This document shows, one piece after another, positions 1 to 7,600 of a DNA stretch of 64,000 bases (its first letter is position 1; each line of letters opens with the position of its first letter). The stretch is from the NCBI RefSeq assembly GCF_003918875.1, contig NW_025767102.1, positions 744,001-808,000 on the forward strand, written 5' to 3'. Both the position numbers and the translations under genes were made by a program. The stretch comes from Haliotis rubra (Eukaryota). A model generated the notes under the pieces. It saw only the letters and a program-made list of their open reading frames with translations, was not told the origin of the DNA and made no database searches.

Positions 1-148
1 ATGCTCATGCTGTTGATCACTGGATTGTCTGGACCAGATTCGATTATTCATTACAAACCGCCTCCATAGAGCGGGGATATTGCTGAGTGCGGCGTTAAAC
101 AATTTGCAACAAACCAACCAAACCAAGTAACCAACTCTCCTGAACATG

Positions 149-370
149 GAGTGAGTGAGTGAGTTTAATTGTACGCCGCACTCAGCAATATTCCAGCTAT
201 ATGGCGGTGGTCTGTAAATAATCCAGTGATCAATATCATGAGCATCAATCTACGCATTTGGGAACCGACGTGTCAACCAAGTCAGCGAGCCTGCCCACCC
301 GACCCAGGTAGTGGCCTCTTAACACAAGCAGAGGTTGATGAAGATCAATTCTTACCTGGTTTTCATGGGT
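149..370 (-). mobile_element. SINE family B copy; another partial copy at 1-135 (+) and a composite at about 2080-2445 (-)
   Basis: Matches the recurring body GGATTGTCTGGTCCAGACTCGATTATTTACAGACCGCCGCCATATAGCTGGAATATTGCTGAGTGCGGCG plus a microsatellite tail. Confidence 0.8.
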
Positions 371-496
371 AGCTTCCCAGTAGCACTATATAAGAGCACA
401 CATTGTAGCAAAGAGAAATGAACAACATGCCTATCCAAAGAAGTATATTTTAGTCGCAGCTGACAGATATGTTGTTTATGCATATTATTCCCATAC

Positions 497-1279
497 CATT
501 TATGTCGGCAAGTCCGAAGACCGTCTTGAGGTCATTCTGGTCCATCGTATGTCCGGTAACAAAGGCGAATTCCTTGACACTGACCACCCCATCGTCGTTG
601 AGGTCATAGGCTGAGAACTTGTTAGGCATTGGCATGAGATGTCCGCTGTAGTCACTGCCCTGTTCATGTAGAATGTGTGAGTGAGTATGCTTTTACGCCG
701 ACTTTAGCTGCAATATTACGGCGAGGGACACCAGACATCGGCTTCATTATACCCATATTGGGAATCGAACTAGAGTCCCCGGCGTGACGAGAGAACGCTG
801 GAACCACAAGGGCACCCCACTAACGAACGCAAGGGGACCACTAATTTTAGATCGTTATAACCACAGTTCGCTACACGTATTTAGACTCAAATATACAGCA
901 AATGGCAGGGACAAAAGAAACAGTTCGTAAAATCCGTCATTTCGTTATAAGCGTGTTCGATACAAACGTAGTAATTGCAAGTACATATTACCTTTCTAAT
1001 AGAACGCTTTCCTCTGTTGCAAAGTGGCACACATACGAAGGGACAGAAGTACATGCCGACCTTGTCTTCACAGAGTCGGGGACACGCAGTCCTGCAGCCA
1101 ATGTTCATGGTCTCATTGACAGCTTTCAGACCAACATTAAGCAGATCTTTGGCCATGTTCTTTCCCATGTTTGTAAACTCCCGTCCGAGGTCCTGCCACA
1201 TACTCCCCAGAAACGCTTGTGCTGATTGGCCAAACACAAGCAGAGTTGCGCCAATCAGGATACTGTTATACAACTTCAT
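497..1279 (-). CDS. Secreted Cys-rich peptide / EF-hand precursor, 3'-partial. Coding exons 1279-992 and 659-497; continues beyond the window start
   Basis: Signal peptide MKLYNSILIGATLLVFGQSAQA, six Cys (CX3CX3CX8CX3CX3C), GKR site. Phase-0 donor AAG|GTAATA at 992/991 joins acceptor AACAG|GGC at 660/659 in frame to the EF-hand loop DLNDDGVVSVKE and the start of a second loop (ADING). Donor G|GTATGG at 497/496. Confidence 0.85.
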
Positions 1280-1530
1280 GGTGTCTGGAAAAATACAATC
1301 GTAAAAAAAGTAAAGGTTTTGGACAGTTCTTAATATTTCTATTACTCGAGCGGCTTAAGACAATACATGCTCACTCACTCAACCACTCCGACTTTGATTC
1401 TAAAGAGATATGTCGTACAAGAATGAGGGAAAAGTCAAGCTAATTCAACAATACTACATGACTTGAATGAGTTTGGTATATGGCCGCTTTGAACAGTATT
1501 ATGGCGGCATAGCGGCTTAATGATCGAGTA

Positions 1531-4610: not shown

Positions 4611-7600
4611 ATGGCCGGACCGGTTGGTGCCTGGCCCGTGATTCTGCATCAGTCGCTGGAGAAGAGCGAAATCAGTCGACTTCTGCGACAAAAGAACTTC
4701 AAAATTCGAAGTAAGTGAGTCCTTAGTCATTAAGTAATTCCCGTGCGACCATGTTGAGGAACTCTGGGGAGGAGAACGCCCACATATGTATGCGTGTGTG
4801 TGCGTTCGTTCGTTCGTAAGTTGTTCAGGTTTCATAGTGCTTTCCTACAACTTATCATGTTTAACATGTCTCGGACACACAGTAGTGACAACAATCCGAC
4901 CAGTTTTGTTTTATACCCTCAATACAGTGTGCCAGGCAGGATAACAACATTAAATACCATGATGAAGCCAGGGAGTCGAACCACCCACATTTCCATCACT
5001 GCCAGACGCTCTGTCCACAAGACCAGACTGACGGTAATTGAAAGTCAGGGATGTGCCTGACAAAAATTCGCGCCTACTTGGAAATCAGTCATATCACTTA
5101 ACTATAATGTGCATTACATATTCTTTAAAGATTCAGAGAGCGTCACCAGCAACAGCATCATCTTCCCCATGTCGGGTGTTGCTTTTATGATCCTAGACCT
5201 CAAAGACGTCATCAGGGACAGCCCCGAAGGCGGCACCAGGACAGAGGTGTGGGAAAGGTGGGGCCGCTTGATGTCATCAATATAGTTTCTTCCTAGCAGC
5301 TGATTCTAAATCCGCATGACATATGCGTCAGGTTTATATCATAAGCACAAATGATATAGTATACTTTACTGGTGTGCATAGAAATATAGGCAAGTGTATA
5401 TAGAGCTTGAGCACTTGTGATAAACGTGTATGACATGTAAAGTGATAAATATATAGAGTCAAAATACAGTAATATATTCATCATCATATGGAAGGGGCGT
5501 AAATCTATAATGTAATGCACAAGTACTGACGGTACACCTATTCTATTTTGTATATACATGTATATGCATTTCTTCTAAACTGGAGATACTAATGAGAATT
5601 GTTACTCCGTGGTGGCTTTATACCCACTATATACTGTGTTACCCCTGTGGACATGATTCAGTGAATGTTACACAGTGTTTCATGGAATCAGTGTAGTTTT
5701 GCTGTTTTCTTTCATCAAGTATTGACAAGTTCGTACAAGTACACCGTCGCTGTTACATCCTGGCTCAAGCTCCATGCCATGCTGAACAGGAACAGTGTGT
5801 CTTCTCCGCCATACAAGAGAAGTAAGTGTTAAAATGTTATGGATAATTTAACACTTGTTTGATAAGCACATTTACCCCGACCTTCCTATTACATGGGTCC
5901 AAGGTTAATGTCCATGATATGATACGTACATGTTTTATTCTCGGTATCCATACAAAATGATAAACTGCTAAAATATTACTTATTACTCTTTCAGTGACCC
6001 CCGAAAGGTCAGTCAAGCATTACCAAAATAAAAATATATCTTTTTCTTTTGAAATTGCTCTTATAGTTATAGTCGAGAAGTTTCGTAATAATGTGTATCA
6101 CGATACGTATCGTATCATTAGGAAATTAACCTACTGTGTTTTGAAATTAGAGGTAGTATAACGGAATTATGATAGCTCTAAATTTAATTTAAAACCGAAC
6201 GCATGTCGGTAGTGTGATAAAGGTTAACCTGATTGTATGACTGAGATAGAGTGTTTGATATCTAATTATTGCTACCTTGCAAAATTTAAGAGTTGAGGCG
6301 CTTTTGCTGAGATGAGGAGTCCGAGTTGTACAAATTTAGAGACTGTTAAAGTGTGTGCCCTGTCAACTTCAGAATTTCACGCACCTCTACGACTGCATGT
6401 GACAGAAGACTCACTGTGGTGCATGGCTCTTACACGCTCATTTGTGTACTTTGTGCTAAAATTCGATTCTTCCCATATCATTTTCAATATTCTGGAAAGT
6501 GTGTTGTGATCTAGTGGCTTCCAAGTGGACAAAATTCATATCGTGATACATATGGTATTGTGACGTATGTATGTGATACATATGGTATTCTCGTATATCG
6601 TGATGCTTTGTATGGTGACCTATATATCGTATCGTATTGAGACCGTACTGCAGCCTTTCACTCTTACTTATGCCTATAGTGGTTAGAGCGTCCGCCCGGA
6701 GAGCGGAAGGTCGCGGGTTCGATCCCCGGCCGCGTCTTACCAAAAGACATAAAAACATGGTACTTGTTGGTCCCTGCCTGGCGCTCGGCATTAATGGGTA
6801 CAACAAGGACTGGTCGGCTCGGAGTCAGTATAATGTGTCTGAGTGGGGTATTCATGCTTCACTGCAGCATGGTATCTCAGTGGGCTAGCACTATAAAACC
6901 AGCTTCAGTCTGGGCTAGTACAAGCAGCCGCACATACACATACACAGGCATGCACGTCGTCATATCAGCGAAATATTCTCAAGCACGACGTTAAACCCAA
7001 TTTCACCTCACCTCACTTATACCTATAATAAAGTCGTACAGGAGACGTTGGCTTTGACTACGTCCTTCCGATTTCCAGGCTATTCATCCAAGGATGACAC
7101 TTTGCATACATCAACACCAAATAACAGTATTTTATGGTAAGCATGTTGGCTGTGGGTATTCACTTAACCTTTCCATTTCCCCAACTGACTAGGCTGGAAA
7201 CATGTATTTGCACGAGCCCTAAAGTCTGATTAGCTGTCAGCCCAGCCAATTCTCTGTGGCAGGAGATATCGATGAACGTGTCTTCTTGTCATGCCGAGAG
7301 ATGACTGCTATTTACTAACGCTTTCGAGTAACAAACAGCAGTGGTATATTTTACATGGACAACATGTTTTATTTGTACAAGATGTTTGGTCCCGTTATTA
7401 TTCTGTGTATCCATCATTCAAAGATATCAGTTGCGGTCTCAGTGTTCAGGCCATCCAAACAGCTAGCACACCGACTGTGCTACGTCTAATTATTGACTAG
7501 TTGGACCCGTGAAGATCCCGGTTACAATTGGCGTTCTGCAACACATACATTGTATTTGTTGTAAGAAGCGACTAACGGAATCGGGTGGTCAGGCTCACTG

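Follow-up and report, generated by a model that had tools for sequence, protein, structure and literature searches.

Gene structure and conservation

A single-copy gene of the blacklip abalone Haliotis rubra, with four coding exons, has its 5′ half at this locus, on the minus strand of the window (the whole 64,000-nucleotide stretch of DNA that was analysed, contig positions 744001-808000 of a 1.38-Gb assembly). The product is XP_046581063.1, a 213-aa RefSeq model of Haliotis rubra with two EF-hands and the generic name “EFCAB1-like”. Analyses at the level of the whole protein started from the database entry. The first-pass annotation of this DNA had confined the gene to positions 497-1279, but two further coding exons lie beyond the window edge, where they were placed by exact mapping of XP_046581063.1 onto the contig (Table 1).

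Table 1 Coordinates of the abalone gene and its elements, and of the octocoral relatives. Positions are those of the window unless the contig or another locus is named.
Feature	Position	Strand	Description or basis
Exon 1	1279-992	-	96 aa, no stop; ends in phase 0
Signal peptide, codons 1-22	1214..1279	-	M-K, hydrophobic core, A-Q-A ahead of F23; translation
Amphipathic helix, codons 23-61	1097..1213	-	Net charge 0, N-x-T sequon at N55; hydrophobic moment and AlphaFold2
Six-Cys array C-X3-C-X3-C-X8-C-X3-C-X3-C, codons 62-87	1019..1096	-	Predicted disulfide-stapled helical hairpin
N-R-G-K-R-S-I-R-K, codons 88-96	992..1018	-	Furin-type R-x-K-R with Gly in amidation-donor position, four-residue spacer
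Intron 1, 332 nt	660..991	-	GT...AG, SINE-like repeat inside; junction as in RefSeq models
Exon 2, codons 97-150 and first base of codon 151	497..659	-	Translation (54 aa), Pfam
Intron 2, first 496 nt	1..496	-	Runs on to contig position 743653
Exon 3	Contig 743652-743578, beyond window edge	-	Exact mapping of XP_046581063.1
Exon 4	Contig 742097-741985, then TGA stop, beyond window edge	-	Exact mapping of XP_046581063.1
Inverted-duplicate segment, 184 bp, inside intron 2	291..474	.	Non-coding; BLASTN
Octocoral copies (Paramuricea clavata)	1838-2233 and 6001-6396 of retrieved locus, GCA_902702795.2		Intronless

No stretch of N interrupts the exon 1-exon 2 region. The splice sites joining the two exons are canonical (donor AAG/GTAATA at 992/991, acceptor AACAG/GGC at 660/659), and the resulting 992/659 junction is used by the RefSeq models of four Haliotis species. 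A phase-0 intron at the same position in Gigantopelta and Patella gives it further backing. The in-frame splice to an EF-hand region proposed earlier therefore holds.

Exon 2 encodes a conserved P-x-P-N-x-F motif, EF-hand 1 (loop D115-x-N-x-D-G-...-E126, window 605-570) and the first residues of EF-hand loop 2 (D148-I-N). Since the phase-1 end of this exon splits the second loop (D148-x-N-x-D-N-...-E159), the C-terminal part of the protein comprises a complete EF-hand pair followed by a 43-residue basic tail. The EF-hand pro-domain of the earlier reading is thus present, not as one EF-hand but as a pair with a 43-aa tail, encoded by three exons. A G-P-F-V-F-E motif occupies residues 163-168 of the abalone precursor. 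An EF-loop-like reading at contig 740701 was considered as a third exon and ruled out, because it sits in the 184-bp inverted duplicate and no RefSeq model has it.

Two smaller features were observed at the ends of the gene. A seventh Cys at residue 179 (exon 4), in a Y-x-Y-C motif, is kept in all gastropod members of the family described below and gives them an odd Cys count; it could form an intermolecular disulfide. Outside gastropods, the EF-hand domain contains no Cys or two, depending on the clade. At the 5′ end, all four abalones have a pyrimidine run and an AG resembling a splice acceptor 5 nt ahead of the start codon (window 1280-1293); in Gigantopelta and Patella the corresponding distance is 1-7 nt. 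A non-coding first exon, which mytimycin genes are reported to have, may therefore precede the coding exons.

A word search with the exon-1 open frame recovered a cluster of four RefSeq proteins, all from Haliotis (H. rubra, H. rufescens, H. cracherodii and H. asinina). The orthologues in the latter three species have the same exons and keep all frames, splice sites and phases, and the upstream neighbour, a SCRE/SPO16-type gene, is the same in H. rufescens. Among the abalones, dN/dS (Nei-Gojobori, exon by exon, split codons dropped) was 0.10-0.16 overall and 0.05-0.13 over the EF-hand exons, and it stayed far below 1 in each exon. Over the Cys array and the basic site it was 0.00-0.09, with 0-2 non-synonymous against 3-12 synonymous differences, and the array was near-invariant while dS ranged from 0.14 to 0.9. 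The abalone gene is under strong purifying selection.

No paralogue was detected in the abalone genome, either with the exon proteins or with a family profile of the peptide; weak profile matches in the genome were rejected as translations of (TGTATG)n-type microsatellites. The protein collection searched contained no transcript-derived abalone protein of the Cys-hairpin and EF-hand family. One Logan contig was considered as an abalone transcript and rejected, as it was 95.5% collinear with H. rufescens DNA, intron included. Judged by its sequence conservation, the locus is a real, conserved abalone gene for a putative secreted precursor.

The N-terminal peptide

Translation of the minus strand returned the 22-aa signal, the amphipathic segment, the six-Cys array and the N-R-G-K-R site that the first-pass annotation had described. 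As all of these elements are in place, its observation is confirmed. Signal cleavage was placed before F23 by the -3/-1 rule, and hydrophobic N-terminal segments align in all family members. The helical hydrophobic moment of residues 23-54 was 0.46, against 0.16 ± 0.08 in 5000 shuffles, of which 0.08% reached the observed value. The N-x-T sequon at N55 is present in all four abalones.

The six Cys fall within residues 62-87 with a spacing of 3-3-8-3-3. They are invariant in a 29-sequence alignment of the peptide region; in a 32-sequence full-length alignment the outer Cys are invariant and the other four are at least 90% conserved. Therefore, the array is not a product of chance. Behind it, R89-G90-K91-R92 forms an R-x-K/R-R cleavage motif with a Gly directly before the basic pair. 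R92 is conserved in at least 90% of the 32 sequences, a K/R-R site is found in 28 of them, and a Gly precedes the basic site in 18, far above the background frequency. The basic site is missing altogether in the remaining four relatives and the Gly is missing in Gigantopelta and unionids, so that release of the peptide would not be universal.

No named family for the peptide was found in Pfam, PDB or the ESM Atlas, in agreement with the earlier decision to leave it unassigned. A Pfam search with the peptide gave just TIL and Cdd1, both non-significant (E-values 0.02-0.08), and NCBIfam gave nothing relevant.

Predicted structure

AlphaFold2, run with the family alignment, placed a helix up to residue 71, a turn at residues 72-74 and a second helix at residues 75-87 (pLDDT 65-70). 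The same helix-turn-helix was obtained when the peptide was folded alone (pLDDT ~60). Structure prediction, which had been suggested as a check on the first reading, was thus in line with it at pLDDT 60-70, and the array is predicted with modest confidence to be a disulfide-stapled helical hairpin. In hairpins of this type, such as those like Ole e 6 or alpha-hairpinin, ladder disulfides from C-X3-C motifs cross-link two antiparallel helices. These pLDDT values count against the hairpin model, as does the wide VIA-align search with the peptide model, which returned just generic long-helix hairpins (Z ≤5.3). The linker at the basic site was predicted to be disordered (pLDDT <50, residues 93-97).

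The EF-hand pair was modelled confidently (pLDDT 93-96) and superposes on calmodulin-lobe pairs over 54 residues with an rmsd of 2-2.5 Å. It also matched Pfam EF-hand_5 above the cut-off, with E-values of 3e-5 for exon 2 alone and 2.5e-7 for the whole protein. Foldseek with the full model found calmodulin-like EF pairs and nothing else. The ESM Atlas gave generic EF-hand clusters alone for the pro-domain and nothing usable for the peptide.

An unnamed family of putative Cys-hairpin and EF-hand precursors

A word search with the C-terminal part of the protein recovered relatives in Gigantopelta and Patella, and a six-sequence profile was then run against 1.84 billion representatives. The search gave 1013 matches, most of which were generic EF-hand repeats. 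Among the matches listed, about 40 small secreted proteins of 110-220 aa cover the array, the basic site and the EF pair in one stretch, with E-values of 4e-118 for the Haliotis cluster and 1e-10 to 1e-51 for distant members. The family was defined by a signal, a twin C-X3-C-X3-C array with a loop of 2-19 residues, a basic site, P-x-P-x-x-F-x-x-Y-D, two canonical EF loops and a G/A-P-F-V-F motif. The abalone protein has the array, the basic site, the EF loops and the gene structure of the family. Positions 1 and 12 of both EF loops (D115, E126, D148 and E159) are invariant in the 32-sequence alignment.

Members were found in gastropods, bivalves, chitons, an annelid and an octocoral, and the gene is not lineage-specific. 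The gastropod relatives include the limpets Patella and Lottia as well as Gigantopelta; the bivalve members come from oysters, an ark clam, venerid, mactrid and myid clams, and unionid mussels; the annelid member is from Owenia. The chiton Liolophura has at least five family genes, four of them on one chromosome, and tandem paralogues occur in the chiton, limpets and unionids. The octocoral Paramuricea clavata carries identical 131-aa tandem copies about 4 kb apart (Table 1), in which an array with a two-residue loop is followed by W-G-K-R. These copies extend the family to Cnidaria.

Haliotis (four species), Gigantopelta and Patella share exactly the same three intron positions, a conservation that spans Vetigastropoda, Neomphalina and Patellogastropoda. 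In all of them, exon 1 ends in phase 0 four residues past the basic site, exon 2 stops in phase 1 within EF loop 2, and a split codon ahead of Y/L-C closes exon 3. For two relatives in the family, the coding sequence runs uninterrupted on cDNA-like contigs (719 and 938 nt).

In most members, the N-terminal peptide is Arg/Trp-rich with a net charge of +9 to +16, and the EF-hand part carries -12 to -22. The charges of peptide and pro-domain were inversely correlated (Spearman rho -0.46, p 0.01, phylogeny uncorrected). The abalone and Gigantopelta peptides depart from this pattern: in both, the amphipathic helix is long and almost neutral and the net charge lies between +2 and +5, whereas most relatives have a short Trp/Arg-rich stretch in place of the long helix. 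In abalone, the peptide carries +2 to +3, the pro-region -2 to -4 and the tail +5.

All family members are unnamed or labelled “EFCAB1-like”, and our literature search found no paper describing a Cys-hairpin and EF-hand family. As far as its sequences indicate, this is an old, unnamed animal family, and it looks like a family of defence-peptide precursors. The precursor had initially been called a candidate new one. Its family is indeed unnamed; the gene itself is already a RefSeq model under a generic name, and what is new here is the recognition of a widespread unnamed prepropeptide family.

Some relatives differ in length. Those from Saccostrea and another oyster-like source, 470-520 aa long and named ‘starmaker-like’, consist of a signal, a reduced array with four Cys, the EF pair and Asp/Ser-rich acidic tails. 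An acidic larval shell protein with EF-hand_5, mentioned for C. gigas in PMC6231486, may correspond to them, and their long tails suggest mineral-related roles for some of the family. In one 526-aa relative, the array, a G-K-R site and the EF pair are fused to what by eye is a secretin-type seven-helix receptor-like part; either a genuine fusion or the merging of two gene models could account for this.

Comparison with known systems

Mytimycins are antifungal peptides of Mytilida mussels, expressed in haemocytes and induced by fungus; they have 10-14 Cys (backbone 10), have been reported from Mytilida only and vary in copy number (PMC8004829). In their precursors, a signal of 23 aa is followed by a Cys-rich peptide of 54 aa and, behind a dibasic site, by an EF-hand extension of 75 aa; exon 1 of their genes is non-coding (PMC8004829). 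By this published description, the abalone precursor has the same elements in the same order, with the EF-hand region likewise on its own exon(s) and possibly also a non-coding first exon. The parallel in layout drawn by the first-pass annotation, with a different Cys array, is therefore real (PMC8004829). However, the abalone peptide has six Cys in a twin C-X3-C-X3-C arrangement instead of 10-14, and its extension is about 120 aa long with two canonical loops on three exons, against 75 aa with one recognised EF-hand motif. The abalone gene is also single-copy, whereas mytimycin genes are variable in copy number and reported from Mytilida alone. No mytimycin was present among the best 150 of the 1013 profile matches or in the results of the word searches.

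The top match in a profile search of PDB sequences was the olive pollen allergen Ole e 6 (1ss3), with a non-significant E-value of 0.06. This small secreted protein has the array C-X3-C-X3-C-X9-C-X3-C-X3-C, nearly that of the abalone peptide, and its solved structure comprises two antiparallel helices tied by three disulfides. Unlike the abalone protein, it is from a plant and has neither an EF-hand partner nor a convertase site. Given the E-value, Ole e 6 can count at most as a structural analogue and not as an established relative.

The possibility that the abalone protein is a relative of EFCAB1 / calaxin was rejected, as the match (E-value 0.46, 13 bits) covers residues 105-161, the EF pair, only. 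Calaxin, a cytosolic axonemal protein with three EF-hands, has no signal peptide and lacks both a Cys array and a convertase site. The signal peptide and the Cys array of the abalone protein are foreign to it, and the RefSeq name “EFCAB1-like” reflects a generic EF-hand match alone. The present finding corrects this misleading database name.

Hdh-SMP5 of the Pacific abalone is likewise small and secreted and has EF-hand loops. It is a shell-matrix protein whose expression has been studied in mantle and larvae (PMC10741955). In this 134-aa protein, the EF-hands follow directly on a 16-aa signal, and there is neither a Cys array nor a basic site. The locus was rejected as Hdh-SMP5 because the two have different orthologues in H. 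rufescens (XP_046328359 for Hdh-SMP5 and XP_046355718 for the locus).

Possible functions of the abalone precursor

The best overall explanation of these data, to which we would give an even chance, is that the gene encodes a secreted prepropeptide that is processed to a defence-type peptide. For the family as a whole, the analogy with known precursors makes a membrane-active host-defence peptide the most likely product. A cationic peptide balanced in charge by an anionic EF-hand part is, by the same analogy, the layout of antimicrobial-peptide precursors such as those of mytimycin.

In such a process, the array would fold in the secretory pathway into a helix-turn-helix with three ladder disulfides. 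A furin-type convertase would cut after R92, a carboxypeptidase would then remove K-R, and G90 would donate the amide, so that a 67-aa amidated peptide (F23-R89) would be freed. The acidic EF-hand lobe may serve as a calcium-loaded chaperone or as a neutralising pro-domain for packaging. Release by a furin-type convertase, often with amidation, is suggested by the position of R-x-K-R in a flexible linker, by the Gly found in 18 of the 32 sequences and by the end of exon 1 four residues further on.

The defence role proposed by the first-pass annotation is supported by the strongly cationic relatives, but it is weaker for the abalone member itself. At +2 to +3, the abalone peptide is barely cationic; it carries the N-x-T sequon, and its gene is single-copy and strongly conserved under purifying selection. 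Many families of effector antimicrobial peptides are expanded and fast-evolving. For abalone, defence is still the first choice, with another extracellular role nearly as likely. It is this departure of abalone and Gigantopelta from the cationic pattern that underlies our grading, in which the defence-type peptide stands at an even chance, an uncleaved calcium-binding protein and a signalling peptide are each considerably less probable, and an artefact is very improbable.

The protein may, with a lower but still appreciable probability, remain uncleaved and act as a secreted calcium-binding protein, for example in mucus, extrapallial fluid or the shell matrix, where the Cys hairpin would anchor it or mediate interactions. 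All canonical ligand positions of both EF loops are kept throughout the family, including the four invariant loop residues, and the extra unpaired Cys behind the EF pair of gastropod members could cross-link. Secreted EF-hand proteins are recurrent in shell matrix (PMC13425148, PMC6231486, PMC10741955), and the long Asp/Ser-rich tails of the oyster relatives resemble acidic matrix proteins. The abalone protein, however, lacks an acidic tail, its own tail being basic, and Hdh-SMP5, the EF-hand matrix protein characterised in abalone, comes from another gene and lacks the array. Four of the 32 members would indeed have no site to cleave, but the other 28 keep R-x-K-R in the predicted disordered linker, with the Gly ahead of it in 18.

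Alternatively, the freed amidated peptide may be a signalling molecule, such as a hormone, a neuropeptide or a water-borne cue, with the EF-hand lobe used for granule sorting; we regard this as a minority possibility. Precursors of the nucleobindin-2/nesfatin type, in which an EF-hand lobe takes part in granule sorting, offer a comparison. The G-K-R signal for amidation and convertase cleavage is typical of regulated-secretion peptides, and the near-invariance of the array among abalones at the dS values given above fits a conserved receptor partner. The single-copy gene, the low net charge and the conserved glycosylation sequon, which weigh against defence, agree with signalling as well. On the other hand, most relatives are Arg/Trp-rich and highly cationic with very variable sequence between the Cys, which is unusual for a family of receptor ligands, and tandem paralogues exist in chiton, limpets and unionids. 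Neither Pfam nor our literature search yielded a neuropeptide family with this array.

Finally, it is very improbable that the model reflects faulty annotation or gene decay, with exons 1 and 2 not joined in vivo: the protein collection searched held no transcript-derived abalone member and the sole Logan contig was collinear with genomic DNA through the intron, but four abalones and two other gastropod orders preserve the open frames, the splice sites and their phases, dN/dS is well below 1 in every exon, and full-length relatives lie on intron-free cDNA-like contigs.

Returning to the defence-type peptide, a broader form of this explanation would place the abalone gene in a pre-bilaterian, calcium-regulated host-defence family extending from cnidarians to lophotrochozoans, in which the EF-hand pro-domain holds the hairpin inactive and packages it, and of which mytimycins would be a derived branch, with the EF-hand extension retained and the hairpin replaced. 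We consider this broader form rather improbable. If it were true, it would provide an origin and a function for the long-unexplained mytimycin EF-hand.

Few immune effectors have been characterised in abalone, which are both farmed and threatened. The relatives of the abalone peptide include many that are strongly cationic, disulfide-stapled and probably amidated, and they have apparently never been named. If they are antimicrobial, they would represent a new and widespread class of invertebrate defence peptides and give evolutionary context to the mytimycin EF-hand extension. Otherwise, the family would still illustrate cleanly how a small Cys-stapled module and a secreted EF-hand lobe have been inherited together from cnidarians to molluscs, a co-inheritance that points to a calcium-dependent extracellular mechanism.

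Repeats around the gene

The segment at window 291-474 has a perfect inverted copy at contig 740535-740718, about 3.6 kb away (BLASTN, 100% identity over 184 nt). The two arms bracket exons 3-4 and the 3′ end of the gene, and recombination between them would invert the 3′ half of the gene. In H. asinina, the intron-2 copy alone was found (79-84% identity) and the downstream copy is absent. Therefore, the downstream copy of H. rubra is either recent or an assembly artefact.

Copies of a SINE-like element with a (CTCA)n-type tail lie at window 664-840 (intron 1), 1530-1700 and 2250-2390. The element is abundant, with dozens of matches of 75-85% identity across the genome. Upstream of the gene, a (CAAA/CAAG)n microsatellite occupies positions ~1990-2100 of the window.
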